A stretch of 64,000 nt of DNA, taken from contig CM060731.1 of NCBI GenBank assembly GCA_030704615.1, positions 34,410,001 through 34,474,000 of the forward strand. Direction: 5' to 3'. Positions 3,001-39,600 of this stretch are shown piece by piece; position 1 is the first letter of the stretch, and every line of letters begins with the position of its first letter. The translations under genes were made by a program, and so were the position numbers. Below the pieces are notes generated by a model. The model was given only the letters and a program-made list of their open reading frames with translations. It ran no database searches and had not been told where the DNA came from. This DNA is from Takakia lepidozioides (lineage: Eukaryota; Plantae; Bryophyta).

Positions 3001-4202
3001 CATCGACTGGTGTTGGGTCCTCGTCGAATGGATCAAGGATCCACGTATCTTCAATCATGTTATCTGGCCCAATCATCAATCCAAGGCGATCCGACACCGG
3101 GCCTGGTGATGGGTCGACGGCCGTGCACGGGTTTCCCCGCCATACAGTAAGGCGGGTGATGACTCTGTTCCATTCTTCATTGAAACCAGAGACACAGGTT
3201 CTGCTCACATGCTGAGTAATCAGAGTTGCCTGCCTGACAGTCCCCTTCATGTTGACATTAATGACTGTCATCATCATGGCCACATGCAAACTAGTGTAAA
3301 GAGCTCAGTTCAAAATCCTTACAAATTTAAACAACTCTTAAGTTAGTAGGTAGTATTGTGTCTACTTACAACGTTGTTGCTAAGCTTACAGAAAGGTGTT
3401 CATGATTGTGAAAAGTGCTTCATCATATGCAATACTCTGCAGTATGCATAAGATATCATTTTAACTTCTACAGGGAGGCAGGCGCCTGTGAATCCAGAGC
3501 ACCCCTCTGATGTCGCTGGAAGACGACGTGATCAGATCCAGCATGCCCTCCTCAACATCTCCTTCAAAAAATCAGATTCGGATCCGGATTCGGATTCCGA
3601 CCTCTCTAGAAGAACTTGGATTGTTTCACACTCGAGCCCATGCTGATTCCCTCATTCGCATTGCAGAACCCACACTGGCCTTCAGTAATCAAGTTGTAAC
3701 TTAGCCGATTAGGGGCTCTCAGTTTTAAATACTAAGGTCTTCAATGCGCATGCGGGCCCTTCCAGGAGGGGCCGTGGGGTCACCCCAAGTCAAAGGCCGC
3801 CAGATCCGCTGTGTAACTTAAACCGTCCAATCCACTGGACGGTCTGTGACGCAGGTCAGTGGGGCGCCTGTCCGCCGGGTCCACTCCCGACGTTTGGTGC
3901 GGAATTATGAGTTCATAAAACATTTCTTTAACCTATAACTTAATTAAAACTCACCACTCCCACCAGGATTTGAGCACCAGATGTCATCATAACCATCCAA
4001 GACCTAGCTACCACTTTTTTTAAAAGTCTTTTGCACTTTTACCGTCCTTGGACAACCGTTTAAGCGATAATTAATTCAAAATGAAAGTGCCTAATGCGTT
4101 TTGGGAATTTTTCAGATTTTGGCCTAATTGTTCGGAAACTATGGGACCAAAGTGCCTAATGCCCAAAAATTCCACCAAAAAACTTGCAAGCCTCTTCTCA
4201 TG

Positions 4203-4538
4203 GCCACTCATTTTAAGATAATAGGGTCTTCAATGGGCACGAGCGATGTGGCCGATGGGCCCCGCGCACTAACGCCTGGCTCCCAGCACCCCGCTCGCCA
4301 CTGCGCGCGGTCGCCCAGCCGCGGGCGCGGCTTCAGCAACCGCGCCCGCGCCCCCGTCCGCCGCGTGGCCAGTCCCTCGCCCATGAGTCCGCTGCCCTCC
4401 TGTCTGCCAGTCTGCTGCCCAGCAATCTGCCAGTCCGCCAGTCCACTGGCCAGTCCCCTGCCATCCAGTCCGCTGACGGCGCAAGATCGCCACCGTCCAT
4501 TTCCATAACCCATCCGAGCCCTCCATTTTTAGGGCTGC
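4203..4538 (+). repeat. Left terminal inverted repeat of the MULE
   Basis: 4203-4233 and about 4379-4538 are reverse complements of 16299-16569. A GC-rich block at about 4235-4378 is present only on this side. Confidence 0.9.
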
Positions 4539-4682
4539 AATTCAAACCTGCATCCCTGCCGCCTGCCACTTGCCAGCAGCCGCGAACGTGCGCACTGTTC
4601 TCCTGGCACGTTGTCGATCGTGTCCTGTACTGCGGCGCGTTTCTTGCATGTTCAGAAGCGTGTCCTTTGTACTGTATAGGGC

Positions 4683-7600
4683 ATGGACATGGAAGCAAAA
4701 CCCGTTGGTTGATATACTGATCACGGGAAGCCCGCTTATACGGCCTCTTCGACAATGTTTGCAAACAGCAAAACCAGGACCCTTCAACAGGAAAGATCTC
4801 CATTGGAAGAGTGAGACGCAATATGGGTTTATGGGTGTGCGACTGAATGTTGAAAAGGCCTGCATACCTGGGATAGAGTTGGTGACTTCGTCCTGGGAGA
4901 GGAGAGTTTGGAGGACTACCCCACTCAGTTTTGGGTGAATGTCCATTCTAAAGTGGAACCCGGCTTGCGAAAAGCACCCAGAGCCAACACATTTCTGTCC
5001 AGTATTATGTGTGCACCATCCTCAGTCCTTTTGACGTTTCATTACATGTCTGTTGCCATTTTTTGTTTCACGAGTTCTCTGATTTTATGCTTCCTCAAGT
5101 CGTTGGATATCGATTTTAAAATTTTCTGTCCAGGTATCAATGCTGCTACGGTCCTGATGACAAGCGCACCAACAAGGCAATAGTGGAGGATCCAAAACAG
5201 AAGCGTGGATGACCTCTTGTGGGTGCTGGAACATCTTGCCCTCATAAAGGCCCAAGGAGAAAGAAGTCGGTAGTGGAAAGTCTTACAAACGTGGTTGCCA
5301 ATGCTGTTTCAAGGTCCAGCAATGCTATCTCGCCCCTGACATCTGTGTTCTCACGTACCACAACAACATGGAGCATACAGATGCGCAAGGGAAACCCTCG
5401 CATGGGAAGTCCGCAGAGTTCAGGAACACCCGCCACGCCTATGCACCACACATTAGCGAGGAATTGAAAGCCTGGGTCGTCGAGTGTTTGTGCCGAGGCC
5501 TGTCGGTCGCCCAAATCATGATGGAGCATAAAGAGCACGTGATGAACAACACCGGCTTGGGCGATGCATGGACCCGCGATGATTTCTTGTTGGAGCAAGA
5601 TGTTCGCAACCTTGCCGAGAAACGTGGTGGCAAACCTTCAAAAAGCACGCCGATGATGCAGAGAATATGCGCATGTGGAGAGACCAGAATCCTGCGTCCA
5701 TTTTGTTCTATCAAGAGGAGAAATTAGAGCCAACATTCGAGCATTTTGATGGAGATTTGACATTCACTATTGGCATACAGACTCCGTGGCAGAAACGATG
5801 AATGCTGGAACTAGGACATGACCGTATCGTTGCATGTGATGCAACATTTGGGACAAATCATGACAAGGTACTATTCGAACGATTCCATGGACTTGTACGA
5901 GCATGATAGCATAATACCATGCACATTCACATAAAATTTGATGTGCTGACCCTTTTGTATGTTTCATGTGTACATTGCGGAAGACCGAGGGGCAGACCCA
6001 TTGTGAACCGCTGCAGACCTCATCACTCTTATGAAGTCTTCTCGTGCAGAACTGAGCGGAATTTGCATGCTCTTACCATCTTACATTGTGCATTCCAACA
6101 GTTCCCATTGTACACGTTGATGGTCTTCGACGAGTGGTTGAACGGTATACCAGTTGTCTATATCCTATCCGCGAGGAATCGGACAAGAGACCTGGTTCCG
6201 TGGATGATAGCCTTGCGCGATTCACTCCTCGCAGATTTGCCGAGCTGGCGCCCAATGCCTTCATTGTGGACGATGCGAAGCAAAAATCAAACGCTATTCG
6301 GTAAGTCTATTGTCCATTGTTTCCACTGCAACAATCCAACATCCACTGGCAGACTCCTGTGGCGAAACCCGATGTGGCGAAACGCTGGGCAAATCCACTG
6401 GTAGTCCGCTGTCAAGTCCGCTCATCAGTCCCCTGGCAAGTCCGCTCGGCAGTCCGCTGTGGCAGTCCAATGGGGCAGTCCGCTGATGCAGTCCACTGCC
6501 CTAGTCCTAGCTAGGGGAAGTCCAATGGGGAAGTCCACTGGGTAGTCCAATGGGGTTATTCCAGCACATCAACGTCATGGCATTGTACTGTCCACTGGGC
6601 GAGTCCAGTGGCTCTGCCCACTGATACAGGTCGCTATTACAATCCACTCCGGCAGTCCACCATTGCAGTCCGATCCCAAGACTCTAATTGTTTTTGAAGG
6701 AGTACTCATTTTCCTCTGCCTTTGGCATGTCCGCAAGGCATGGGTGAAGCAATCATGCAAGAAAACGAAGGATCCGGTGACCGCTGTAAACTTGTTGAAG
6801 GATATGGGAGACCTCATGTACTGTAGAGGGGGACCACGCAACGAGAAAAGAGCGCTTCGGTGGGTTGTAAGGAGAATCCGTCGTATGAGGTCAAAATACC
6901 CGAAATGACATGAATTTCTTGACTATATCGAACAGTACTGGAAGCCCAAAATAGCAATGTGGTGTATAGCAACCCGCCATGACCCTCATGCGAGCCAAGA
7001 CACAAACGCAAGCATTGAGGCATACCATGGAAATCTGAAGGCAAGACTTGCTATGGGGAAAGGCAAGATGAGTGGTCGTAGAGTGGACTGGCTTATATGG
7101 GAACTCACTGGCCGTGTGCTAACACACTACTGGTACGCAATCCATTTGAAGACCACGGGTTCATAAGAATGACAAACACGAAAAGTACATATCCAGTTCT
7201 ATACTTAGCGGCACGAGACATTCCTGCTGAGAGTGTTACCCTTGGGTCCTGGTTAACCAGCCTACGTTCTCAGCAGCAACCACCCCGGCCACAAACATAC
7301 ATTGTTTACAATCCTGATTGCGATTGGGGTTGTTGCACATGCCCATGGGCATGAAGGGAAACTTATGCAAGCATCAGGTCCGTGTCCTGAAGATGCTTCA
7401 CCCTGACCTGCAGGATGGCCTCCTTGTGCGCGCTTGTGGCACGGCGCTGGGAACCATTCATGGAGGATTACCTAACTTGCTCTTGGGCAATGGTGCCAGC
7501 GGCAACGACAAATCCAATCAATTCATGGAAAGACATCCTCCGGACGAAGACTTCCCTACGACGAGGCACCTCTGGAGGTCTCAGCCTCATTGGAACAAGA

Positions 7601-7940
7601 ATTCACGGACATACTTCGCATTGTAGGTGATGACAAATACCTGGAGGCACATGCCCGATCTGCTCTTCATATGTGCAAGGGCAGCTCGTTGATATCCTGG
7701 CGAAAAGTGCGGCTAGAATGTGTTTCACCCTGCCAGCGGCAGAAGGCTTTCCGTCCTCTGAACGACACAACAACACATGTCTCTGAAGGGAGACGAGATT
7801 TCGTGGAGGCCTGGAAAACCCGGCCTAGGGTTTTGCAGAGAACCAGCAAGAGGGTGTTTGCACTTGCACCCGCAGCACATATATACTCGAAAATTCGCAA
7901 GGTTTCAGGTCATGTAGATGTCACAAAGAAGACAATATAA
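4683..7940 (+). pseudogene. MULE DDE transposase with SWIM zinc finger (At4g13970/At1g60560-like), spliced, frameshifted as assembled
   Basis: Motifs in order across frames: DRVGDFVLGEE..YPTQF; YQCCYGPDDKR; KRGCQCCF; HTDAQGKPSHG..YAPHISEELK..RDDFLLEQDVRN; DATFGTN (D at 5838); FPLYTLMVFDEWLNGIPV; FIVDDA (6269); CLWH; IEAYHGNLK (E at 7017); RRVDWLIWEL; SWIM CTCPW..KGNLCKH (about 7334-7374). Likely GT-AG introns near 5868-6101 and from 6301. Start and end are approximate. Confidence 0.88.
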
Positions 7941-8152
7941 GTCTGTAATGCCTCGAAAAGAGACAAGGTTTCATATCGTGTAGGTGTCACGAAGAAGACA
8001 ATATAAGTCTGCAATTCCTCGAAAAGAGACAAGGTTTCACGTCGTGTAGGTGTCACGAAGAAGACAATATAAGTCTGCAATTCCTCGAAAAGAGACAAGG
8101 TTTCACGTCGTGTAGGTGTCACGAAGAAGACAATATAAGTCTGCAATTCCTC
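7885..8152. repeat. 66-bp tandem repeat, about 4 copies
   Basis: CAAGGTTTCA recurs at 7898, 7964, 8030 and 8096. Unit TGTAGGTGTCACGAAGAAGACAATATAAGTCTGCAATTCCTCGAAAAGAGACAAGGTTTCACGTCG. Confidence 0.95.
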
Positions 8153-8782
8153 TGGTGGCATTGTCCCTTTCTGAAATACAAGTCCGCAATGGACTAATGC
8201 ACAGTCTCCCAACGGACTCCTCCAGTCTCCCAACTGACTCCTACATAGTCTCTCAAGCATAGTCTCCCAACGGACTCACGCACAGTCTCCCAACAGAGTC
8301 ACAGTCAACAGACTACGAGCGCCAGTAAACCAGTCTGCTGCCCACTCCAAAAGTCTGCTCACCACACTTCCACCTCATCACTGCAACTCTTCCAGCAGAC
8401 TGCTGGACAGACTAAGTCTCAAGCAGACTCATCCACAATAGCAGACTCAAAATGGACAGGCTCCAGTGGACTACCTCCCTAACGACTCATGCCAATCCAG
8501 CATCCCAGCGGACTCATGGACATGGTGCCTACCAGACTAGGTACCAGACCCACCCGTCCTAGCCTCGGTAGCGTACTGCTCGCACATTCAAGCTCAGCAG
8601 ACTCGGGTGCACAGTGCATGGAAAAATTGACACCATTGTGTCCATTGAGTTTAGTGACAACATTACAAAACATGCAAGCACCCACAGTACACAAAAGTGC
8701 TCATCACCACTGGAATAGTAAGCGAAAAGACTCGCATTTTTTTATTTCGGTACATAGACTTCACATGACAAGTACATCATAT

Positions 8783-10438
8783 TCATGAGAGTAGTTTCTC
8801 TACATTGTCCAACCCCCGCACGATATACTGGGCACACTGCATTCGCTGCCCAAATGCAAACTTGAAAGTAAACCAGTCCTTCGTGAAAGGTGTTCCTCTC
8901 TCTGGCTTTGCAGTCTTGGAGACATTTGCTCTGACTTTTACCCACTCATAAAACACTTGAATGAATGACATGACGTAAAAGCCACACTCCCAGCTGAATG
9001 GTTGCTGGGGCACATCAGGCGCGTGGAACTGAAATGCTTGGACAATCTCATGCCACTCTGGTGAGTCCATCGAGTACCCTAAGCACTCAGTATGAAGCTT
9101 CCGAATCCACCCTAGAACAAAGGGACATTTATGCGAGTCCCTGATAGAGTTCAGGTGAGTGTAACAACCTTTGCGGAGGTCGATGATACAAACACTCCAA
9201 TGCCCCCTGCAATGGTATCAAACAACATGGCGTCATTGCACAATCATGATGGGCAGACTCAACATACTGACACTCAGCAGACCAACCACTCAGCAGACTC
9301 AGCACTCAGCAGACTCAATCTTCAAACCCAGTCCACTGCACAAATACAGAGGTCAACTTAATCGCTCGGAGTCAAGACGACACTGCGAAACCAGACTATG
9401 ACTCAGGAGACAGTCTCAGCAGACTCGGAAGAGTTCTTACTCGTCCCCAATTGGCACCAAAATGAAATCGCACTCTTTCAAGTCCTTGCCCAGTCGTTCA
9501 GTGCTAAGGCAACCTTTCAAGACCTCCAGAAGGCTTTCACGTTGCCCCACCCCCAATGACTTCAACACCGTCCACGTCGACGTTGGAAGAACAACAATAG
9601 TGTTGGTGAACGCAGCCTTAACTGACTTCTCATAGAATCGACACCACAGCTCCAGGAGTCTATCTGTGCACTCCGACTCAACCTTCTGGAGCGCCTTTAT
9701 GTCATCCAGCGACAGTCCGCATTCAAACCGTGGGTCCCCTTCAAAAAACATCAGCATGGAATTACCCGCCTTCACGTGCAGAACATGTGCTTTGCCAAAC
9801 CGAGCACCCATCCTGCACAGAGCAGACCATCCTTCGGGAAGCCTCATGTACTGAACAAACTGACGTCAACATGGTACCAAACACTCTACAGGCTGAACAA
9901 TTCATCAGACTGACAATATTAACCACAACAGACAATGATGTAACCAGCAGCAGACTGACCAGCGTGCAGACTGACCACAACAGAGCGCAAAACACTTAAC
10001 GACAAAGACAGACGAGGAGACTGAGCACAGTACTCACCTGTGCTGCTCTAGGAAACGACCCACATCTTTGTCCATGTCCAAGGCCAGCTTGCGGTTCTTC
10101 TTCATAAAGACGTCAGACTTTTTCTTCGCCGGTCTCTTGGTACTCGGACCCTCCTCGACCTCCTCAGCATGGTCCCCGACAGTCCGCTTCTTGGCTTTGC
10201 CTCTCCCCTGGGAAGCAGGGACAGCTGTAGGCGGGCTGGATAGAGCAGACAAACGCAGCGCTGCCGCCCTACTTCGCAACAGAGGCGGGTCAGCAGGTTT
10301 GTTTACACTTGTTGGACCTGTCTTTGCAGCTTCGTGGGTCGCATGCGTAGAACTGACCCGCGCATCGGGAGGCGTGCTCACCCCCACACCTTTCTTGGTT
10401 GTCGATCCCATGTTTGCAGCATGGGCGGAAGATGTCAT
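8783..10438 (-). CDS. ULP1/SENP-like (peptidase C48, CE clan) cysteine protease, transposon cargo, spliced; probably the C-terminal part of a longer gene
   Basis: Exon about 9850-9441 ends ECDFILVPIGD(E) at a GTAAG donor. Exon 9206-8783 reads in frame GHWSVCIIDLRKGCYTHLNS...PQQPFSWECGFYVMSFI, giving His, Asn (Asp position), oxyanion Gln and Cys. The upstream exon in 10034-10438 is low-complexity and basic (KRPAKKK), and its splice phase does not match perfectly. Confidence 0.82.
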
Positions 10439-11099
10439 GTCCTAAAAAAGCAGTCTGCCGACAGAGGGACGAACATCCTGTGAGGATACCGAGCAAAATG
10501 ACGAATTAGCCCAATTTCACAATGTGCTAAAACATAAACAACAGTGCTGAAAGAAGAAATGGCACAACGTGCCTAAGGGGTGAGGGAGCAGACTCCATGT
10601 AATCCAGCGCTATACCAGACGGTGTCTGCGCCGCATGTGGTTCCTTGTCAGTGTGTCTGCCAGCATATTTAGTCTGTTGCTCAATGTGGGCAGTCTCCTC
10701 GGCCGCTGGTTCTTCGTCAGTCTTTTCGTCTGTGAACTGTGCAGTCTGCTGGCAACTCTGCGGTTCAGTCTCTTCCTCAATGTGGGCAATGTGCTCGATG
10801 GCAGGTTGGTCGTCAGTCCTTCCCTCTGTGAAGTGTGCAGTGTGCTGGTCAGGCCGTGCAGTCTGAACTATGCAGTCAGAGACGGGGAGCTGGATAAGAA
10901 TGCTTTACCGGTGACCTGATGACGTCGTCAGTGAATGTGCCTGGGGGAAAAGTGGACTTGGTCAAAACACTCATACTGGCAGATCCAAAAACATGTTGTT
11001 GGGAACTCAGCAGAAATTCGTCCACAAGGTCCCGGTGAGGCCAGTGCATCTGAGTCTGTTGCACAATCCAGAGAACAGACTGGCTGTTAGTCTCCTGGA

Positions 11100-11400
11100 T
11101 AGTCTGCTCGGCCATCTATTGAGTGGGTTCGCCAGTGTGCTGCACAGTCTGCTGAGGGGCAATCTGCTGGCTGGATTCGTCGGTCTGTTGCACGGTCTGC
11201 TGAGGGGCAATCTGCTGGCTGGATTCGTCGGTTTACTGCATAGTTTGCTGAGGGGAAATCTGCTGGCTGGATTCGTCGGTCTGATGCATGGTCTGCTGTA
11301 CAGTCTGCTGAGGGGCAGTCTGGTGGCCATGTTTGCTTGTCTGTTGCACAGTCAGCTGAGGGGCAGTCTGTTGGCCGGTCTGTCTCCGGTCTGCTGCAAA
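11100..11400. repeat. 48-bp tandem repeat, about 5 degenerate copies
   Basis: Unit CTGCTGAGGGGCAATCTGCTGGCTGGATTCGTCGGTCTGTTGCACGGT, visible as a 16-aa periodicity in the ORF track. Confidence 0.85.
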
Positions 11401-11729
11401 GTCTGCAAAATTCGCTACCCGCTCAGTACTGTTTGCACATACTGAGTATGTGTGTGCGGGGCGGTCTGTTGGGAGTGATCCGGCCTATTACCTGGGACGG
11501 TCTGGTGCACATGCTCGGTCTCCAGCACTTGGGCAGTCTGCCCACATGTGTCATAGGGAATACGTTGTTGGACATTCTTGTGGCCAGTCTGTTGGACAGT
11601 CTCCCGAATTCTTTGTAAAGCCAGGACAAGGTCCCTTGCACCTCTGGCAAAAGAGTTGAAAGCAGCCTGCACTTGCTTGTCTCCCAGATCAACTCACCCT
11701 GCAACACATGTTTATGCAAATGTGAACTT

Positions 11730-14526
11730 CTAAAAAAGTTGGCAAAAGAAATTGAGCTGAAACACGAAAGTTGCCCATAACATTTTACATTCCAAGAGAT
11801 TTCCGATGAGGCCAATGTCCTTGATTTGCCGGCACATGCATGCTCCATCGAGATGAGCAATGGCGCCGATGCGGTCTTCAGTTGGGATCCCACACCACAG
11901 GACTTTGAAGACATTGGGATTCTGCAAAACAATGTCGAATACTGCTCGCTCCATCACCAATGCAAACCAGTGCAATGCGTCATCCACCACAAACTTCTAT
12001 AAATGGTCTGTTCCATGGAGTAAGTCCATCCTCAAACTATGCAGATCCTTCATCAACTTGTTGTATGAGCGGAAATTGCCAAATTGCATCCATCTGTGTT
12101 GTAGGAAGGAAGCTGTCATGCGCTCAAAGTCCTCCTCAGTCAATCCGAACAAGTGCTTTCTTCGCACCCCAAAGGTTGGATGTGCCATAGGCATATGTCT
12201 AAGGTCTTCAGGCTGTGGGTCATCCATGAGAATCAGCTGCACAAGTAGAGGTGGCGCATTTTGGTCGCTTGTGGCTTCAATGGCAATAGCAGAGGCGGCT
12301 TCTAGAACATGGTTGGCTTCCTCAATAGAAAACTCCATGGAATAATGAAAGGGTACAAATGACCACCGGCGATCCGCAACAATCCGGTGGAGCTCATTAT
12401 GCCAATCCAAATAGGGATTAATTTCTCCCACCCTAAGCCGGGGAAGTGTGAGGTCTTCAGTGGCCTGCCTTCTATGACCTTCCAGCTTAGTCCCGTTTTC
12501 GTGCGCTCAGTGGCGAAAGCCATAGATGAGTCTTACGTGATGACCGAACTCAATCTGGGAACGCAAAACCGTATTATAGATCTTACAGAAGAGTCTGAGG
12601 AAGCAATTGCCAGTGGGTCTTCCATACATGTTCTTGATGTTTCCCAAGTCCATGGAGATCCGAACACCCAGCCGGCTGTCCACCAGACTGACCAGCACAC
12701 TGAACAGTGGACACATGGAAGGACTGCCGAGCAACCTGTGGCGCGGCAACATACTGTCTTCATTGATGAGCAAACTGAACCGCAGACTAACCAGCAGACT
12801 GCACAAGTCACAGATGGAAGGACTGACCAGGATGGCTCGGATCGGCAGACTGCACAGCTCATCCGGGTCGAATTACCGGTGATGGCGATCGCCAAACTGC
12901 AAAAAATGCCGTGCTATGTGAGAGAAAGGCAGTCTGCTGGTCCGCAGTCTATTGGATGACATGACTTCCCATTGGCATGCGCTGCATGATGGGCTCCTAG
13001 AGAGGAGTCTGCAGAATGACAGGCTGCTCGTTGGGAGTCTGCTCCGTTGGAGTCTGCTGGATGACGGCCTGCTGAATGGGAGTCTGCTGGATGGCAGACT
13101 TGGCTGTCCCAGACGCATTCCCCCCCGACGCGTCTTGAATATGTAATGCCGCTATAGCAGCAGATGACCCAGGATACTTCAATAATATGTACTCTCGCAC
13201 GCGGTCCACTTCCGCACACACTGCAGTCGCTTGTAAAGGAGCATCATTGCTAGGTATCCGCCAAGCTTGAATGGCCCTACGAATAGAAACACGTTCATCC
13301 TGGTACACGGCAGAGAACTTGGACGTCAGGAACATGGACGTGGACTCTATATTCACCTCATGCAGCGGACTGGACTCACAGACCAGCAGACTGTAACGTG
13401 CGTACGTAGGGTGGAAGCAACTAGTAGACTATACCAGTGGACTGGACCAGCGGACTGACAAACGGACTCAGTAAGTAATGCAGCGATATAAAACAGACTA
13501 ACTGACGAGCGGAGTGAGCCAGCGGACTGACCAGACTGAATAGGCAACGTGACCCCGATGATGGACTCAAACAGCACAGAGAACAGACTGGGCGGTCAGA
13601 CTGACCATTACCTCCTCTACTTCATCATCATCATCTTCATCTTCAAAGTTGTTCAACCAGTTCTGTTCCGCCTATCGGATGAATGTGCGTAGCAGACCTG
13701 ACTCGACAACTCTGTAGAAATAACGGAAGAAGTCTGGATCCCCAATTGGTGGGCACTCTGGTGGGAAAAGCCCAAAGTCAACGAGGCGCAATGTGCCAGG
13801 GCAGACTGGCCCTTCAGTGCTCTGTTGAGTTTTTGGTTTTGACCCTAAACCGATGGCATGGGTCGCGATATTTGTGTGAGTCTGTTGCCGAGTCTGGTCA
13901 GGCAAGTCAATGTCTACTGGACTTATCACCCCTTCCAGGCCCTGAGCAGATTCACTTTCAGTATTAGTACTGATGGTGTGGGTCTGCCGCCCAAGACGGG
14001 GTTCAGTCTGTTGCGTGGATTTTGCCCTTGCCTCGCGAGCAGACCTTGCAGCCTTCTCCTTTTTTTGCCTCTCCTTTTTTTGGGCCCCATCACTCAGTTT
14101 AAGTTTTCTGGGAGCGTCCAACGTTCCCTGCACTTGCAAATCCTCCATTGACGGGCCACCAGAATGGACGCCATACCGTGCGCGTACTTCATCTAATTCC
14201 AAAGTGCGGGGGTCAAGCACTGATCCGCGCAAGCGCATTGTGGCCTCTTTGACAATCGACATTTCTTTCAGTATCGGCCAAGGCTTGAAATCCCGTGGAA
14301 TCATTGCAACAGTCTCCTTGCAACCCGTGTCAACACAATGTCGATTTAGTTGGATTTTGTCCTTGATAACCTCTTCACAGAAGGGACAGAAGAGCTTGTC
14401 CTTCTGCCAATTCGAGTTTTTGGGCTTCCGGGCGCGGAGGTCTACAAATGCTTCCACTATTTTATGATCAAACTCGTCTGATGAGTACCAGTACCTTCGC
14501 TCCTTCTTCAGTCTGGTTTGGTGCAC
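11730..14526 (-). pseudogene. Uncharacterised MULE cargo coding segments, including a CxxC...HxxxxxC zinc-finger-like exon
   Basis: ORF 13672-14526 contains FCPFCEEVIKDKIQLNRHCVDTGC. ORF 12997-13356 and collinear ORFs 12302-12523, 11997-12431 and 11730-11990 are joined by one frameshift and one in-frame TAG and have globular composition. Same strand as the ULP1 exons. Confidence 0.55.
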
Positions 14527-16298
14527 AAATCCACCCAGTCCGCTCCACCCTTTTTACAAGCATCCTCCATCGCTACAAAATGAAACGAAGGTGCAAGGAC
14601 AATGAGCGACAGATAGAAGTCCTATGAAAAGACTCACCCTAAGCAAGAAGATGACACAGAATGGAATGGAAACACCGCAGCAAGTGAGAACCTCACCGAG
14701 CCGATGAACTTCGAGTTGTTACGAAGGCGAGCGTGTTTGCGACGCTTCGCGGCTCACCGCGACTCTCCACACCTGGGGAAGAACGGTCGTCTTTCGTTAC
14801 GGTGATGGAAACGCAAAGAGGAAAACAAAACAGTGCAAAACAATGCGAAGAAACAGGCGCGAAGAGAATGGAGTCGATCGCACAGGGAACATGAGAAGAA
14901 AGTAGAAGTAGAAGGGGGAAAGCGGGCATGGCACTGCCAACGTGGCGCAATTTCACAGGCGCCAACTATCCGCCGTCATCGCATTGAATACGTCCACCGA
15001 ACAAACGCATCGTACTTAATTCATCCACGGTCCTCGCAAGTGCAGCAGACTCATTTCCCATCGGGCCGAGAGTCCACCGGACCGCCAGTCCAGCGGACTA
15101 TTCGCTTTGCTGATGCGAAACGGCTTCATATTGGAGGCACTTCCCTGCCAGCGGAATGAAGACAAAAGAGAGTAAGGGGAGAACAGGAAAGTCGAACACA
15201 CCCATTGCGAACAGACTCGCGGCACAACAGACTGATGCATGCACAGTCCAACAGACTGATATCCATAGAGGAGAACTGTCCAGCAGACGGACGTTTCGCC
15301 AGACTGACGGAAGAACAAGCCAAAAGACTGTCCGGAGGGAAAATAAGAAGTCAAACAGACTTAGTGCAACAGACTTCCGACACAACAGACTGACAAATTC
15401 ACAAGTGCGACAGACTGATATCCCAACAGACGGACTTCTAGCAGACCACCTCCAAACTAACTGTTGTGCACGCGATAAGAGGAATATCCGGAGCACTGAC
15501 GGGCCAGTGGACCCACTGTGAATAGACTCGCGACACAACGGACCTCAAACATCCACACCAATTGTCTCAGCCTGGTCCGTCTCCTGGCAAATGCGACAAT
15601 GTACCGATTCTGCACCTACTCCCGTCGTGGCTCAGACATCTGTATTCAGCAGGTGGTGTGGATGTTTGAGGACCTTACGACTGGATGATGTTCCGTGACG
15701 ACTCGAATTGTTTTTTTGTGTTGTCATCCCTTATATAATACCATGTGGATCCATCACAAAGCTGGGTTGCTTCAGATTCTCCACCATTTTCCACAACTTA
15801 TGCACGACGGATGCAAGCCGCTATACTTGGTCACATATACAGTCCCATCGTCCGATACGAAATCTGCGATACACGCCCCCATGTGCATACGCTTCCACCA
15901 TTGTTACCCATGGGTTCCTTTAATGAACTAAACTTGTGAAGGCTCTCATGAGGGATGCAGTACGAAGGGGCTAAACGTATCATGACGGATCACAAGCAGA
16001 GGACGTTATCGACGACAGATGTCCGCATTTTCCATATTTATGACATAGAACCAAACCATAAAATGAAGGTTCCCGAAAGCACAACAAGAAGGCAAAAATA
16101 GTGGAAGCATATGCACGATGGTGGCTGTAGTGCCGAGACAGTCCTCTCATGTTCAAGCACACGCTTCATCATCATCATGAACATCGCGCGCAAAAGAGGA
16201 ACAGTCGCGTGCATGGAAACGCCTACCGCAACATCGGACAACAAACAGCCGTCAAAAGAGAGCGGCCGGGATTTGGTGGGAAGATCATTGCCATTTTC

Positions 16299-16569
16299 GC
16301 AGCCCTAAAAATGGAGGGCTCGGATGGGTTATGGGAATGGACGGTGGCGATCCTGCGCCGTCAGCGGACTGGATGGCAGGGGACTGGCCAGCGGACTGGC
16401 GGGCAGACTGACGGACTGGCAGACTGCTGGGCAGTGGACTGGCCAGAACCGGACTGGCAGGCAGACTGGCGGACTGGCAGGCAGACTGACGGACTGGCAG
16501 ACTGGAGGGCAGCGGACTCATGGGCATTGAAGACCCTATTGAAGACCCCATTATCTTAAAATGAGAGGC
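16299..16569 (-). repeat. Right terminal inverted repeat of the MULE
   Basis: GCAGCCCTAAAAATGGAGGGCTCGGATGGGTTATGG... matches the reverse complement of the left TIR. It has extra GACTGGCA-type units and a duplicated ATTGAAGACCC. Confidence 0.9.
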
Positions 16570-17269
16570 CTTCTCATGTTGTTTGTAATAAGATCAAAAT
16601 TTCATTGAACAAAAATCAATACAAATATATTCGTGCAAAAATAACTTCCTAACAAACCGCAATCTATTTGTGAGAGCTCCATGTAACTTCGAAAGGCCCT
16701 TGCATGGACTCCACTACGTCATCATAGTAGGGTTTCCAAGGAAATGAAAGGTAGTTGGAGCCTGGAAGGGCCCATGGACATTGGGTGTCTATTTTGTAAT
16801 TTTATTCTTAAGAAAATAAATGTTTTTCTATGCCTAAATCTAAAAAATTATAGGATGAAGATGCCTAATGTGAGAAATGGTTCTCAAAACGTGCCGAATT
16901 TGCTGATTGATTGAATTTATTATTATGCGCAAAAAAATGCCTAAAATGGTTGTATGGGGACGGTAATGTGTAATCTAGCTCAATTGGTTTTACAACAAAC
17001 CAAAACCAAGAAAATAAAGAATGACATGGCGTCTCACCGGGCATTGATTATGGCGGGAGATTCTTGGTCGAGGGACCAAGAAAGGAACCTTGTGATTTGG
17101 AGTTTGGCTCACCAATTCAAGTATGGAAACATTAAAATATAAATTTCTCAAATGACCCTGACCTTGAGTTAGAATCAAATGTTACCCCACCGCTTGCTAT
17201 GTACATGCCTCATGGCCTCCGGTCTTGGTTATTTTTTCCAAGACTCCTATTAATATGGCCTCCGTGGCA

Positions 17270-17488: not shown

Positions 17489-18691
17489 TCTTGAATGTGG
17501 CAGGAAAGATGAAATACACCTCATGTTAAATTTTCTTGGACTTGGAAGCTGGCCCCAGTTGGTCCATGGCCTTTACACATGCCAACTTTGGTCCCTACTA
17601 TATTATTATTCTAATATGCATCTAGGGACCAAGATCTGGACCAATTGGTCTAGATGCTTGATCCACAGTCTAAAGTGGCCCTTAGAGGGGAGAACCAGTA
17701 GCCAGTTACATGCTAACCCAGTGGTTTTGAGGAGTTTTGGAGTGATAATCGAAACCTTAGGAGTTTACATAGGAAATTGACAATTGTAGTTACCATTAGA
17801 TGGGAAGCAACCTACTCCCCAACCCACTTAGCCAGAAAGCTACTCTTTATGAACACATCCTGATCAGTTGATGTTCATTGCTCCTCACGAGTATGTATGA
17901 ATTGTCTAGGATTGCTAGCAGACAAGAGAGTAGTTAGCCCAAGTAATGAACATTAAAGCACCGAGCACCATTGCACGCACTGTTTCTCCAGTGTCCACAC
18001 ACTCACAACACAGACAGTCTGTACTCAACTTATTAGTACTTGATGGAAGAGGTTTTGTCGGGGGCGTCTGGGATGTTTGGTAGATGTACAGATTCAGCAT
18101 CTGGGCCGGATCCTCCTATCCACGACTATACTGTAGAGAAAATTGGTTCATCTGGTTGGGTTATCTGGCAGATTAGTGCATCGCCCTTCTACCTAGATCT
18201 ATAATGAGAGCAGTCGGATAACCCAGCTCCAATTTCTAAGCCTGTTTTAGAACATCTTCGGGAATCGGGGTGCTAATCGTCCACAGTGAAGGTTCTTGAA
18301 TAGAACCGTGCGCTAGGCCGATGGCGATGCGCTCGCACGATCTTGGTAATGGGCCGCACAGTCCGCCTGACAGTCCCCAGACTTCTCGCTTTCCTTCTGT
18401 CCGCTTTGCCTTGTTTCTGTAACTGTTCTGACTACCTACTAGGCTTGGAAGGCGTGTACACTGGGGGAGGTTTAGAAAGGCCTAGCTGCAGGTCTCTGAT
18501 CCTTACTGTCCACACATGAGTAGTGGGCAGGAAATAGGAGTTCACCTAGTTTGGATATCTCAGACTGGAGATTTCGAGGTGAGAACTGAAAAGCCTTAGC
18601 AATGCAACAGACATTGTAGGATTGGGGAGTGTCTGCACGACACAGCCAATCTCTCCACAAACTTGCGCAAGGAATACTTGGTCGGAAGACC

Positions 18692-19219
18692 ATGGCTGCC
18701 AGCTACAGGATCGTGCGCTCACAAAGCGCTGTGATTCTAGCATGGACCACTCTTCTAGCGTGCGGGATGTGGAAGCCAGCTGAGGCAAACTGGGCGGCGA
18801 GCGAAATCGAGAGTTTTCTCGGTCCCCAAAACGCGGCCCGAGCTCGGATTGGCCTCCGGCCCCTTCAGTGGGACGACCGTCTCGCAGGTTACGCACACTG
18901 GTGGGCCGTTGAAAGACGAGAGTATGGCGATTGCCAACTCCAGCACTCGGGAGGGCCATACGGAGAAAACATTTTCTGGGGATCAGGCAAGAGTTGGCAG
19001 CCTTCGGACGCCGCGAATGAATGGGTGAATGAGGGGAAATGGTACGACTACTACTCCAATTCTTGCTTCTACTACAGAGCCTGTGGGCATTACACTCAAA
19101 TCGTCTGGCGCAGAACTACCAGGGTGGGATGTGCGAGACAAGTGTGCAGTGACGGCAGCATCTTCATGACCTGCAACTACTACCCGCCTGGTAACTGGGT
19201 GGGGCAGAGGCCTTACTAG
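18692..19219 (+). CDS. PR1: Pathogenesis-related protein 1-like (CAP/SCP domain), secreted, intronless
   Basis: Hydrophobic N-terminus from ATG 18692. Motifs FLGPQNAARA, LQWDDRLAGYA, HSGGPYGENIFWG, CGHYTQIVWR and CNYYPPGNWVGQRPY. Confidence 0.95.
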   Translation: MAASYRIVRSQSAVILAWTTLLACGMWKPAEANWAASEIESFLGPQNAARARIGLRPLQWDDRLAGYAHWWAVERREYGDCQLQHSGGPYGENIFWGSGKSWQPSDAANEWVNEGKWYDYYSNSCFYYRACGHYTQIVWRRTTRVGCARQVCSDGSIFMTCNYYPPGNWVGQRPY

Positions 19220-20224
19220 GCAGCTGCAAGAAGTGTAATCTTTCTCTTTCTCTTCAGGACTCTCTCTTCCGATCAACATAATAACCACATTGCCTCACAC
19301 ATCTGTGCCATATTGTATACTGCAATCCTTCATTGGGCCGGCCTTGTGTGATCTATCTCCAGGGAGAGCGACCTCCGACCTGATATCCATGATGTTACAG
19401 ACTCCCGTGTTTGGGCTTAGAGTTATCAACCGGAGCTGTAACACGAGTTCTTCAACTTTAGCCTCAGTGTAATCTGTACTGAGCGCCAATCCTGGACCCC
19501 AGGTGGTGCGAACTTCGTCGTAAGAATAGACATATAGGAATTGTTGCCACTCTTTGCGTAGGCGCTCTACTCAGTCTGGAACTCTTACGACCTTGTTCCA
19601 TAATATTCCTTTTCTCAAAGATATGATCATCCAATGGGGGGGCCGGAAGCTTCGTCTCTCGAGTTCTGACCGGTTTTGAACTAACTACAATGTTCCAGCT
19701 AGGATGCCGATCTATAGTCCAAGGTGCAGTTGTATATGATGTGTCTACCTGCAGGTCCCTCATCAATTGATCATGCAGATGTGCCAGAAATTTTGAACCT
19801 CGCTAATGTCACGAACATCGAAGTAATCTCGACATCCATATGCCCGTGACACAGATTTACATGTAAAATAATCGGAGGGATCAGTCGGGTGCCATTGCTA
19901 GTCGATAGTCGGTTCAACATATTATGTATAGAGCTACCACGCTACCACCAGCTTGCTTTGATGGAAGCTCTATCAGGACTGTGAAAACACATGCATGCGC
20001 ATGCACATTGCAGAGGACCATGCTTGCAGCTGTAAGAGAGTTGTAGAAGATATATTTGTACTTGTCTACACGCTGTGATCTGCAAGGACTGGAAGAGGAG
20101 GCTTCAATGCATTCTTGAGCATGCATTTTGGCTTAGAAAACTCAAATCTCCATCGTCTAGGGGCGCGTATGGAAATTTCGATTGCTAAATTCCTCGCTGA
20201 ACACACCTACAATCTCGATGCACT

Positions 20225-34194: not shown

Positions 34195-34370
34195 GAAACC
34201 AGATGGTCACTTATTTAGGGAATAAATTAGGGATTGTTTGTGAAGAAGAGGTGAAAAAAAACTTGAGCTCTACCATTGTCAAACTTCTTAAGGTTTCTGT
34301 TATTGAAGAAGAGGTGAAAAAAAACCAGATGGTCATCATGAATGCTTATTTAGGGTTTGTTTGTGAAGCC
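34195..34370 (+). repeat. Detached satellite fragment, inverted relative to the main array
   Basis: Near-exact reverse complement of about 39005-39170, including the variant AATCCCTAATTTATTCCCTA. Confidence 0.88.
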
Positions 34371-34795
34371 ATAGGCATGACTCTCTTGAACAACTCTGCC
34401 CGCTGGGCACATACTTGTGTCCACACATCCGGATCATCAAGATTGAGGACTACTGCAGTTTCCTTGGGAATAGATGTAGGCTAATCTGGCTCTCGGCCAA
34501 AGAGAAGGAAATAAGGCGAGAACAAGGCAAGTGATGTTTGCTTGCTAAACCTGTAGCCCATGGCCAACCAAGGTCCCAATCTCCCAAGTGTCCCTTCCGC
34601 AAGCCATACTTGCGCAACCCTCGATTGACTGTTTGTACAATCCTCTCTACCAGGCCATCAGCCTCGGGATGATCCCGAGAAGTAGTGCGGTGGTCTATCA
34701 ATGCTTGCTCACACAAAGCCTAAAACTCCCTCAAGAATTCTCTCCCTTGGTCCGTGAGTACCTCGGCTGGAGCACCAAATTGGCTAAGCACTCGA
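34370..34795 (-). mobile_element. Ty3/Gypsy integrase core fragment, degenerate
   Basis: FGAPAEVLTDQGREF...IDHRTTSRDHPEADGLVERIVQTV, the second D and the E of the DDE motif. Confidence 0.88.
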
Positions 34796-36530
34796 TCTTC
34801 TGTTTTCCAGACGTTCAATAAACTGACACTGAAAAGTTATTCATCTTATATGACCTTAAGACTTGAGACCTTATATTTGGAGTTGTCAAACTTCTTAATT
34901 ATGTCGGGTTATATGAAGTTCATGAATTATGGGATGTTTGTAATGGAGGAGAAGATGTGACCATGCGTCTACCTGAGAGGTTGGGCGTGGCTATTATGCA
35001 GTGTTTATTAAGGTATAATAAAGGCTAAATCAAGTGCCATTTTTGGTTATCCACGCATGTCCATATCGAAATTGTACAGTTTGATTAATTTTCCGAGGAG
35101 TAATTACGCAGGATATTCAAAAGTGGTGTGGGAATTTGTATAGGTGTTGGACCCCTAGGTAGTAGATGTGCTCTTTGGTTCATTCACAAGAAATGTATGC
35201 AAATCACGTATGTCTAGGAGCCATGTCTAAGAGTCAAGCTTAGGTTGATGCCACCCAAAATGGGCATGTGCGTGTTAAGTGGATTGAGTCGTTTGAGGAG
35301 TTGGTAGTAGAATGAATGGCTCCAAATTGGCCCAATTGGTTTGCTTATACCTCATTACCCACAATGCCTATGTAAGAGCGAACTTTGTGTATGAGAATTT
35401 CTAGCAATGATGTGGAAACCACATCGATGATTGCTTTGATAAGATTAAGATCAATAGGAAGGTTTCGGTTTATAAAGAGGCAGCAAGAGACCAAGCTATC
35501 CATCAAAAAGTAATAGGTTGGAAGAGATTGGCATGCACAAGTAGGAATCTTGTCCGTTTGAACTGCAATCTATGCGACTGGTTGTCCAAAGGCACTCATC
35601 CTACGACTGTAAGTCACAACAAACACTATTTTGCCACGGTGGCATTGAAAGAAGTTATGTGCCATATTCCGGGTTGGGCACCCATTTTTGGCCATTTAAT
35701 GAAGAAAACAAAAAGTAATAATTATAAATATCTCAAATTGGTGAGTTGTTTTAACTACTTCAGTTGCGACTATAAATTGTTGTTATGTGTTTCATAGTGC
35801 GGTGAGTCCGCGCTTCATTTTAACCACTTCATTTTAACCACCCGTTCTGCAACTACCACAAATAAAATATTCGGATTATGTGGTACGTGGATGATTACGT
35901 CAAGGTTACTTGTTGTAGACTACTCCTTATCGGCTACGTGAACATGGCAGGTTGATGTTACATCGAGTTGCGGGCAACCGGCTATAGCAGGTCAGTACAT
36001 GTACCTACCCGTTTCTACCTTCCTTCCCGTTTGTCACCCTACCCCCTTGTTGATGTGAACGATTTAAGTTTTGGTGCAGTGCTTTGTTGTCTATGATGAT
36101 TATGCCATTCAAGCCAACACCAGTATATGCTCAAGCTTAGGCTTCTGATGCTGTTGATTACCAAGAAGAATGACGATTTTTGTACCGAATTTCAATGCTC
36201 CAATTGGCAATCTAGTGTTTCATTTCCATTTTGATGATGCTGCACAGGCTAAAGAATACTTCTTTGGCAATGAAATGGATTGTTGTTGATAGTCGGCAAT
36301 TCATGAAGCAGATACTCATTCTTCGTACAATGAATGACACTCATTCATCCAATAAAACTTGTGACGATCATTCCTATGAAGAATCTGAAGTGCACAATTT
36401 CGGTTGAGTATTCAATCTCATGTTGAGCATAGCATCATGTTGTTCATCAACGAGGAGAGGAGGGAGGTTCTGGAGAGGAGACGGGTTATGAAAATTCGTG
36501 GACCAATGAGGACGCAGCTTTCTACCTACT

Positions 36531-37390
36531 TGTTAAGCTCAGTAGGTCGTAAATGAGAAGAAGGTCACAGGTATTAGCGGGATCAAACCTATCTCCTATA
36601 TTCATGGCCTTATGCAAGTGGCTGGCAACCAGCATAAGGCTCTCCGCATTTCTCTATCTCGTAAAGTTGTTCTTATCTGATCCTCATTAGTGTAGGTATG
36701 TAGAGTAGTCAGGGCCACATTAGATTAGGTAGGTGGAGTAGTTAAGACTTTCAGGATATAAATATTCCTTTGTGTATTGTGTTCATCGCTCTCGAATGCA
36801 GATTTCTCATGGTATCAGAGTTTGGAACTTAGCTTAGACTAGTAGTGTTTTTGCACAGAGTAGTATTATGCACAAACTCCCAGGGTTGATACAGTTCAAT
36901 CTGTAATAGGAGGGTCTAGGGTGAAGTTGCACTTGCACGACCAAATTACATGTCTAACACTAGGCTTGGGTCCGCAAGACAAAAACGTAGATATTTTCTT
37001 GTTCTGTGCAGTACATGTATTATTTCCTCGTCTATTATTCTTTCAACATATTTATTTTATGAACTCATTCTACAATCACAGTAGATAGAATAATTAGACC
37101 ATAGTTCATTAGGTTGGGTTTTGAATCATCATTCTCTGAGCTTCACAAATTAGAAGGAGTCTCAAACTACGTCACTTGGAAATTTAGAATCCAGAGTATT
37201 CTGAAACGTGAAGATTTTGGGAACTAGTCGAGCCAAAGCCATTCCCCACTATCCCCAGCTCAACGGTTAGTGCTATTGCTACAAGTGTCACCTCCGACAT
37301 CGCCTCCCAAACAAGCTCCATGGACAATGTCATACTCAGAAAGCAGAATCGCAAGGCCTTATCCATCATCAAGTTGTCTGTGAAACATCT
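36531..37390 (+). mobile_element. 5' portion of a Ty1/Copia LTR retrotransposon (LTR, PBS, gag start)
   Basis: TG...CA LTR about 36531-36809, tRNA-iMet PBS TGGTATCAGAG at 36810-36820, and gag N-terminus KLEGVSNYVTWKFRIQSILKRED(L)WELV...RKALSIIKLSV at about 37148-37385, which is then truncated. Confidence 0.82.
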
Positions 37391-37478
37391 GTCGTGCACC
37401 TAAGCATCGTGCCACAACATACATCGTTGTCGGCCACCATACATTCTAAGCACACAATCCTAGAAAGCTATGCCACAA

Positions 37479-37841
37479 TGATAATGAAAGTGAACACAAT
37501 GGAAAGACTTCACTCTTGAATCCACTCAATCACATAAACTAAGTCAAGCCAAGGGCCCCCTTGCTAAGAGAATCCACCCTACAAAGCCCTCAACACACTC
37601 CCTCTCAATACCTAGAGCTATGGAGGTGAGAGAGGCTCATGGAGGCTCAACTACAAGAAGATGAGCCCTCCTCAACACTCACAAGGGGAAAATCCATCCC
37701 CATGTCCCAAGAGGTTTGATACCTCACTTGGCATGTGAGACCAATTGAAGTCCCAACACACAAAATACAAATATAAATATCCAAAATGTCCTAGTTACTA
37801 TAAGTATGTAATTCTAATTAACCATGACTAAAACCATGACA
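37479..37841. mobile_element. LTR-like segment (TG...CA) flanked by an 85-bp direct duplication
   Basis: Starts TGATAATG and ends CCATGACA. Flanked by near-identical 37391-37477 and 37845-37928. Confidence 0.5.
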
Positions 37842-37844
37842 GCC

Positions 37845-38350
37845 GTCGTGCACCTAAGCATCATGCCACAACATACATCGTTGTCCACCATACATTCTAA
37901 GCACACAATCCTAGAAAGCTATGCCACAATCGCCCTCTTAGCTGGTGCTTAGGTCCCTCTAACACCGGATAGCTGACAAATATCCATCTCAATAACATCA
38001 TCGCTTGGCCTTCAATTGCACATGTCCCAATTTTCTAAAGTATATGGATCAAGAGGCCGGGTGCAACGAGAGCCCCATCGTTGGTCGTCTGCTTGCAATC
38101 CATGATCTTCAATTGAGTATCCACGGCGTTGAGCTCCCACCAGCTAGACCTTGGATCACTTGTCAACCTCGCCACTACCATGCCCAACTACCTCTGTCCA
38201 AGGCATCGTGGACACAACCATTCTCCACTAGGAACCTCCTCAAGTGGCGGTGTCAAGCATCCAATGTGCCACCCCCTTGAGCATTTGTCACATACCAGCA
38301 TGGTTGCGGCACCACCAGCATGCCCACATAGCATGCAACACAATCCTGCA
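37845..38350 (-). mobile_element. 3' end of an LTR retrotransposon: PHD finger, polypurine tract and LTR start
   Basis: CMLCGHAGGAATMLVCDKCSRGWHIGCLTPPLEEVPSGEWLCPRC (C4HC3 PHD), then AGCTAAGAGGGCGAT directly before TGTGGCATAGC on the minus strand at 37928. Confidence 0.75.
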
Positions 38351-38529
38351 GGAGTGCAGCTACGTCGTGAGCCTAGCTGCGTGAGCCCAGGAGCTCGGCT
38401 CACGCTTTGCCCTCTAAGCGTGAGCCCAGGGGTTTAGTGGAGTAAGAAGCAGGCCACATACCCGAGTCCTCTGTTTAGAGAGGGTCCTATTGTCGTGGAA
38501 GCAGTTATAGCGCTTAAAAAAAGAGGTAT

Positions 38530-39600
38530 AGAAAACATGGAATGGTCATTGTGAAAGTTACTGAGGTTTTCTTATTGAAGAAGAGGTGAAAAAAAAGGCT
38601 GGGTGAGTCATCATGAATCTTACTTAGGGATTCTTGCATGAACAAGAGGCAAGAAAAGTTTGGATGCTCATTGTCAAGCTATCTGACGTTTCCACCTCTT
38701 CTTCTATAACAGAAACCTGAAGAAGTTTTACAATGATAGAGCTCAACTTTATTTTCACCTCTTCTTCACAAACAAACCCTAAATAAATGACCATCTGATT
38801 TCATTTTTAACCTCTTCTTCAATAACAGAAACCTGAACAAGTTTGACGATGATAGAGCTTAACTTTTTTTTTTACCTCTTCTTCACAAACAAACCCTATA
38901 TAAGCATTCATGATGACCATCTGATTTTTTTTTCACCTCTTCTTCAATAACAGAATCCTAAACAAGTTTCACAAGGATAGCTCAATGTTTTTTTTTTTTA
39001 CCTCTTCTTCACAAAGACATCCTAAATAAGCATTCATGATGACCATCTGGTTTTTTTTCACCTCTTCTTCAATAACAGAAACCTTAAGAAGTTTGACAAT
39101 GGTAGAGCTCAAGTTTTTTTTTCACCTCTTCTTCACAAACAATCCCTAATTTATTCCCTAAATAAGCATTCATGATGACCATCTGGTTTTTTTTTCACCT
39201 CTTCTTCTATAACAGAAACCTGAAGAAGTTTGACAATGATAGAGCTCAACTTTTTTTTCACCTCTTCTTCACAAACAAACCCTAAATAAATGACCATCTG
39301 ATTTCATTTTTAACCTCTTCTTCAATAACAGAAACATGAACAAGTTTGACAATCATAGAGCTTAACTTTTTTTTCTACCTCTTCTTCACAAAGACACCCT
39401 AAATAAGCAATCACAATGACCATGTGTTTTTTTTTCACCTCATCTTCAATAACACAAACCTGAACAAGTTCCACAATAAACTGCTCATTTTGTTACACAT
39501 CTTCTTCACAAACAAAGCCTAAATAAGCTTGAAGATGGTCATCTGTCAAATTTTCACCTCATCTACATTAATAAAAACCATTGCCTGTTTCACAATGAGT
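38530..39600. repeat. Satellite array of alternating ~60-bp A/B subunits, with a ~503-bp higher-order repeat and an orientation switch at about 38690
   Basis: About 15 copies of (T)nCACCTCTTCTT, followed alternately by CAATAACAGAAACC..TTTGACAATGATAGAGCTCAAC or CACAAACAAACCCTAAATAAGCATTCATGATGACCATCTG. 38530-38690 is in the opposite orientation. Confidence 0.92.

Follow-up and report, generated by a model that had tools for sequence, protein, structure and literature searches.

A decayed high-copy Mutator-like element of the moss Takakia lepidozioides and its probable kinship with seed-plant SWIM genes

A 64,000-nucleotide stretch of the Takakia lepidozioides genome (assembly GCA_030704615.1, contig CM060731.1, positions 34,410,001 to 34,474,000 of the forward strand; hereafter the window, in which all positions are given) carries at 4203-16569 a transposon that is very probably a degenerate member of a high-copy, cut-and-paste family of multi-gene Mutator-like elements (MULEs), from a green-plant MULE clade apart from MuDR, FAR1 and MUSTANG, one member of which was domesticated into the SWIM genes of seed plants (hereafter the host genes). 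This clade is apparently undescribed so far, and the element's relation to the domestication donor is that of a cousin; it is not itself the donor. We regard it as a MULE of the mobile type because it has a target site duplication (TSD), terminal inverted repeats (TIRs), a D-D-CxxH-W-E catalytic set and Ulp1 cargo, and because its family is high-copy, its target was found empty and a relative is spliced.

The element is bounded by paired ends and by a 9-bp TSD, CTTCTCATG, with the copy at 4194-4202 repeated exactly at 16570-16578, which bears out both the borders and the perfect duplication given in a preliminary description of the window. Direct repeats of 5-8 and 10-13 bp at the element ends did not match, leaving 9 bp as the only matching length, within the 8-10 bp characteristic of the MULE superfamily; an 8-bp TSD with GG ends was rejected for the same lack of a match. 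A scan for 8-11 bp TSDs and paired ends around the transposase gene returned, apart from this pair, a single chance match within the TIRs. The left TIR (4203-4540, + strand) is composite, with a terminal 35 nt, ~140 nt found on this arm only, and subterminal blocks containing GCRGACT repeats, and the right TIR (16291-16569, - strand) carries an expanded block of the same repeat. The terminal 35 nt pair at 91%; beyond the ~140 nt without a right-arm counterpart follow inner blocks at 4379-4412/16492-16525 (34 nt, 97%) and 4406-4538/16299-16443 (~130 nt, 88-90%), so that the paired blocks total ~200 nt at 88-97%, as in MULEs with long (>100 bp) TIRs. The TIRs had been described as long and intact; they are long, but the arms are interrupted. 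A lone 38-nt stretch at 3713-3750, 79% like the left end, for which a partner was not found, is probably the end of a related element.

In run X1, for which 4699 contigs were placed, summed contig depth was 57 in the unique flank versus 11,000-62,000 across the element. This 200-1000-fold excess, as found for dispersed multicopy MULEs, is no copy number as such but points to hundreds of copies, and the presence of 42% of the element's sequence words in runs of merely 3-5 million letters is likewise consistent with a high-copy repeat. Contigs of two other samples (X7 and X8) cover 4053-4202 and then continue for 30 letters matching the sequence from 16579 onward (29 of 30), representing the target without the element and with a single 9-mer. 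A metagenome scan recovered distant decayed relatives only and no member of the element's own family. The target of the insertion is a repeat of ~550 bp (4042-4202 and 16579-16963), with TA on both sides, CCGTCC/GGACGG ends and high depth in X1, probably a miniature inverted-repeat transposable element of the Tc1/mariner type.

The transposase gene spans ~3 kb of the 12.4-kb element and consists of four exons on the + strand, separated by GT-type introns at 5009-5133, 5868-6101 and 6301-6685; a damaged donor in intron 1 was considered and rejected. Exon 1 (4756-5008), with a start codon that is not fixed and a frameshift near 4868, is joined to exon 2 at a junction (5008|5134) across which a contig of X7 and X8 reads at ~90% identity to the element; because of this read-through, a related copy is spliced there. 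Exon 2 (5134-5867; stops at 5210 and 5799, frameshifts near 5270 and 5626) encodes YxCxYGPDD, a KRGCxC...H zinc-finger-like region and the first catalytic Asp (DATFGTN, near 5838), and exon 3 (6102-6300; frameshift near 6250) the second (VDDA, near 6269-6272). Exon 4 (6686-7760, 3' end approximate; stop at 6906 and several frameshifts) encodes CxxH (6717-6728), the conserved Trp, the catalytic Glu (IEAYH, at 7017) and the SWIM finger (~7330-7375). The motif series listed in the preliminary description is present.

The exons and the DDE and SWIM regions of the reported spliced open reading frame (ORF) likewise stand, but the frame is not intact. Its three stops are all TGA, at least 10 single-base frameshifts set it apart from other copies, and the acceptor of intron 3 is deleted; differences from other copies are biased towards C>T and G>A, the pattern of decay under methylation. 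Some of the frameshifts sit in homopolymers and could be assembly errors. As assembled, this copy is unable to make transposase and lacks the open frame of an autonomous element. A 12/13-nt tandem motif array occupies part of intron 3, and a 66-nt tandem repeat (3.9 copies) lies at 7898-8152. Searches used single exon pieces, the joined protein, with X at each break, serving for alignment and trees only. Against Pfam, the element's own pieces gave sub-threshold matches only, with no FAR1 or MuDR domain detected, whereas relatives of the transposase matched PF10551 above cut-off; a PDB sequence search with the family profile returned no match.

The D, D, CxxH, W and E residues of the element form the set that defines MULE transposases, namely DDE with (C/D)xxH and a Trp upstream of the Glu. 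The C/DxxH motif, common to MULE and hAT transposases, matters for catalysis, and in Hermes its His contacts the scissile phosphate (PMC5499845, PMC7780238). The full set occurs in the element and in 6 of 7 fern and Riccia proteins, but in only 1 of 111 and 0 of 118 host-type proteins, although D-D-E itself is retained in 97 and 110 of these, respectively. Because most host proteins keep D-D-E, this triad does not separate the element from them, and the three acidic residues pointed out previously (DATF, VDDA, IEAY), while present, are not diagnostic of mobile status. In two host paralogs the His of CxxH is replaced by Arg, and in the angiosperm 690-aa type the first Asp by His; judging from these replacements, the host proteins have most likely lost cutting activity. 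A third host paralog, which the preliminary description did not name, is represented by P0200-P0211 (Tetracentron, Macleaya, Papaver, Elaeis and Liquidambar, with Ginkgo Gb_37568); its angiosperm members have His for the first Asp and an intact CxxH, whereas the Ginkgo sister keeps the Asp and has CxxR.

A 135-aa piece of exon 2 yielded 154 matches among 1.84 billion proteins, the named ones comprising angiosperm low-copy genes and proteins of Taxus (18 members at ≥90% identity), Cryptomeria, Adiantum, Riccia, Diphasiastrum, Amborella and Trebouxia. A profile search added Ginkgo and more than 100 angiosperm proteins, one of which (P0282) is named 'like AT1G60560' in its source. The longer host paralog is named 'zinc ion binding' in several sources, and the same annotation is given to At4g13970 (PMC6265505). 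The Arabidopsis proteins themselves were outside the comparison set, and of the two likenesses originally proposed, that to At1g60560 holds through the source name of P0282, and that to At4g13970 only indirectly, through the shared annotation. Element and host proteins are 29-36% identical over ~600 aa in reciprocal matches, and the local search gave full-length matches with E-values of 1e-75 to 1e-109. At the Taxus loci of P0151, multi-copy relatives are accompanied by a convergent gene 4-7 kb downstream, as in the element. Around a related transposase of Trebouxia, two nested inverted-arm pairs (9745-9842/13574-17760 in the numbering of locus L004) have arms of 26-40 nt, without a clear TSD.

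The three introns of the element coincide in codon and phase (2, 0, 2) with introns 1-3 of the host genes, as compared in Carica (long type), Jatropha (At1g60560 type) and Macleaya (690-aa type). In a tree of 28 rows (LG+G4, rooted on algae, five short or gappy rows left out), the host genes form one seed-plant clade with 100/100 support that comprises three paralogs, two with a Ginkgo sister and the third with an unnamed transcript protein as sister. The host clade is short-branched and lies among long-branched transposon-like proteins of liverworts, ferns, conifers and green algae. Homology over the full length and introns at common positions place the element and the host genes in one wider transposase clade. 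The view that the element is a mobile member of the lineage behind the host genes accordingly holds as far as the lineage is concerned, given the reciprocal matches, introns, high copy number, empty paralogous target and tree; a special closeness to the host genes does not.

An improbable stronger version of this relationship would put the element in the very sublineage that gave rise to the host genes, as their closest mobile sister. The three shared introns would fit, as would an identity of 34-36% with the Ginkgo and 690-aa paralogs, but the element falls neither inside the 100/100 host clade nor beside it as its sister, and constraining element and hosts to one clade costs 35 log units and is rejected by the approximately unbiased test (p-AU 0.0185). 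Fern proteins are as close to the element (34-38%) as the hosts (31-36%) or closer, Taxus and Ginkgo share 41% versus 36% for the element and Ginkgo, and host intron 4, present in Riccia P0035 and in Trebouxia, is missing from the element. Evolution in the opposite direction, with an old host gene captured by a Pack-MULE-like shell or transposons derived from a host gene, is in our view very improbable: the element's gene is spliced like the host genes, and Riccia and Amborella have possibly domesticated single genes, yet the complete catalytic set is in the element and not in the hosts, relatives from algae and ferns that have all of these residues branch outside the host clade, and the gene, multi-copy here and in Taxus, occupies the usual transposase position beside the left TIR. 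The slimmest chance is that of an ordinary MuDR/FAR1-type plant MULE with a merely generic likeness to SWIM genes, for which the 9-bp TSD, long TIR and Ulp1 cargo are usual features and the predicted fold of a relative, resembling FAR1-like and other MULE proteins (TM score 0.6-0.7), would speak, but which conflicts with the lack of FAR1 and MuDR Pfam domains, the shared introns, the strength and full length of the host matches, and the Atlas neighbours of a fern relative, with plant SWIM genes first and animal MULEs next.

Several observations weigh against the preferred reading of a mobile-type MULE from the clade behind the host genes. The backbone of the tree is unresolved, the branches of the element and of the Taxus, Cryptomeria, fern and Riccia proteins are long, and the tree is without MuDR, FAR1 and MUSTANG rows, so that the separation from these would follow from the searches, the missing FAR1/MuDR Pfam domains and the introns. 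Scans for TIRs with TSDs around relatives in Riccia, Trebouxia and moss-sample (Sphagnum) metagenome contigs gave none that was convincing. Multicopy status is derived from depth and contigs and not from further complete copies with TSDs of their own, and the RNA status of the X7/X8 contig that crosses the splice junction is a guess. Because the empty-site contigs show 15 differences from the flank over 150 positions (90% identity) and the flank is itself repeated, the empty target is a paralogous site and not an allele; the proposed check of other samples thus found an empty target with one 9-mer, but not an allelic one. Finally, Riccia P0035 and P0077 and Amborella P0040 also look domesticated, so that domestication may have occurred more than once or at another date. 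Degenerate active sites are seen in these three and in Diphasiastrum P0188, P0035 (L016) in addition having long introns and no TIR; the four are possible further or older domestications.

Compared with the MULE superfamily as represented by maize MuDR and Aedes Muta1, the element has the same 9-bp TSD, TIRs of >100 bp that start with G and contain subterminal repeats, and a DDE+CxxH+W transposase with a SWIM finger, but differs in its N-terminal finger (no MuDR/FAR1 Pfam domain), 12-kb multi-gene layout and interrupted TIRs; MuDR and Muta1 are too distant from it to be retrieved by searches. The seed-plant SWIM genes (At1g60560, probable At4g13970 and 690-aa types) share the homology over ~600 aa, introns 1-3 and, mostly, D-D-E, but are low-copy and slow-evolving, have a fourth intron and no TIR or TSD, and have lost the His of CxxH or the first Asp. 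FHY3/FAR1 and MUSTANG provide a precedent for MULE-derived host genes but belong to other MULE clades. The ZSWIM1/3 and DUF5575 proteins, Atlas neighbours whose PF21056 RNaseH-like domain matches relatives of the element, are animal host genes with distant similarity only.

The element also carries cargo, which the preliminary description missed: a Ulp1 gene, further ORFs and a GCRGACT array in mostly non-coding DNA. The Ulp1/C48 SUMO-protease-like gene (8783-9847, - strand) is convergent with the transposase gene, has two exons and matches PF02902 above cut-off (E 3e-12), with an active-site pattern of His in HW, Asn where Asp is usual, Gln and Cys. A basic low-complexity ORF piece at 10034-10438 (-) would be a possible upstream exon of this gene. 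ORF pieces at 11730-12443 (-) lie between the arms of an internal inverted repeat (10716-10852/12688-12827, 76%), and a 284-aa ORF at 13672-14526 (-) contains a CxxC...HC zinc-finger-like stretch that matches zf-Di19 at E 0.13 only; its single-sequence fold was uninformative (pLDDT 43). The ORF pieces of the cargo had no Pfam or Atlas match, and a 148-aa piece none in the Atlas. GCRGACT occurs 64 times in the element, versus 3.5 expected by chance and 10 in the remaining 51.6 kb of the window; 51 of these 64 are found beyond the TIRs, chiefly in intergenic DNA and introns, and just 1 falls in transposase exons.

In this respect the element resembles VANDAL/KAONASHI and other Ulp1 MULEs, in which transposase, Ulp1 and an unknown gene occur together and tandem repeats of non-coding DNA hold amplified copies of a short motif, but VANDALs lack long TIRs and belong to another transposase clade, and VANC homology was not detected in the Pfam and Atlas searches of the cargo ORF pieces (no direct comparison with VANC was made). 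One account of the cargo, with close to an even chance of being right, takes GCRGACT to be the transposase's TIR-binding repeat spread by slippage, and the Ulp1 gene and ORFs to have no anti-silencing role. The motif reaches its highest density in the TIRs, where it is mirror-oriented, like the Muta1 subterminal repeats (PMC5499845), no similarity to VANC was found in those searches, and transposase-binding repeats of the Muta1 type could explain the TIR copies equally well. Slippage sits less easily with the 51 copies outside the TIRs, which avoid conserved exons as do VANC targets, located in non-coding regions (PMC5735166), and the lack of a role less easily with the Ulp1 gene, of which distant metagenome relatives (L001, L005 and L006) keep the same C-terminal motif at the same position and strand. 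On the analogy of the VANDAL/VANC arrangement of cargo and motif (PMC5735166, PMC13317346), we tentatively suggest, at somewhat less than an even chance, that the Ulp1 gene, the ORFs and the non-coding motif array may help the element to resist silencing.

By analogy with the biochemistry of Muta1 and IS256, the family transposase would bind the TIRs, its N-terminal zinc-finger-like region probably recognizing the subterminal GCRGACT repeats, and its DDE/CxxH site would cut both element ends, with insertion at a 9-nt stagger. On the host side, a single domestication before the gymnosperm-angiosperm split would have been followed by duplication into three paralogs, of the At1g60560, probable At4g13970 and ~690-aa types, which most likely lost cutting and kept the DNA-binding fold. 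The complete scenario, in which a three-paralog gene family older than the gymnosperm-angiosperm split and disabled by His>Arg or Asp>His, not by loss of D-D-E, descends from an undescribed green-plant MULE clade that was recently mobile in a bryophyte and whose mobile branch carries a Ulp1-plus-motif anti-silencing system independent of VANDALs, is speculative and, taken as a whole, rather unlikely.

Elsewhere in the window, a second foldback-like element (34210-39530) has long AT-rich repeat arms (60/125-nt units) and chromovirus-like integrase and PHD-like fragments inside. Host-like ORFs recognized by eye are PR-1/CAP-like (~18500-19220, +), MBOAT/wax-synthase-like (44510-45742, -) and SMG7-like (49661-52376).

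Our literature search, limited in coverage, found no paper describing these SWIM genes as tamed transposases, and At4g13970 and At1g60560 were not found in the parts of a study of exapted genes available to us (text and supplements; PMC5715367). The kinship proposed here offers an origin and a testable function for conserved plant genes whose only annotation is 'SWIM zinc finger' or 'zinc ion binding'. Like FAR1 and MUSTANG, they probably derive from a transposase, bind DNA and have lost catalytic activity, and they are apparently older than MUSTANG, which has been dated to early angiosperms (PMC3435246), whereas the SWIM host clade includes Ginkgo. A recently mobile cousin provides the comparison needed for testing which changes tamed the protein, and in its cargo it may possess another, independent system against silencing.

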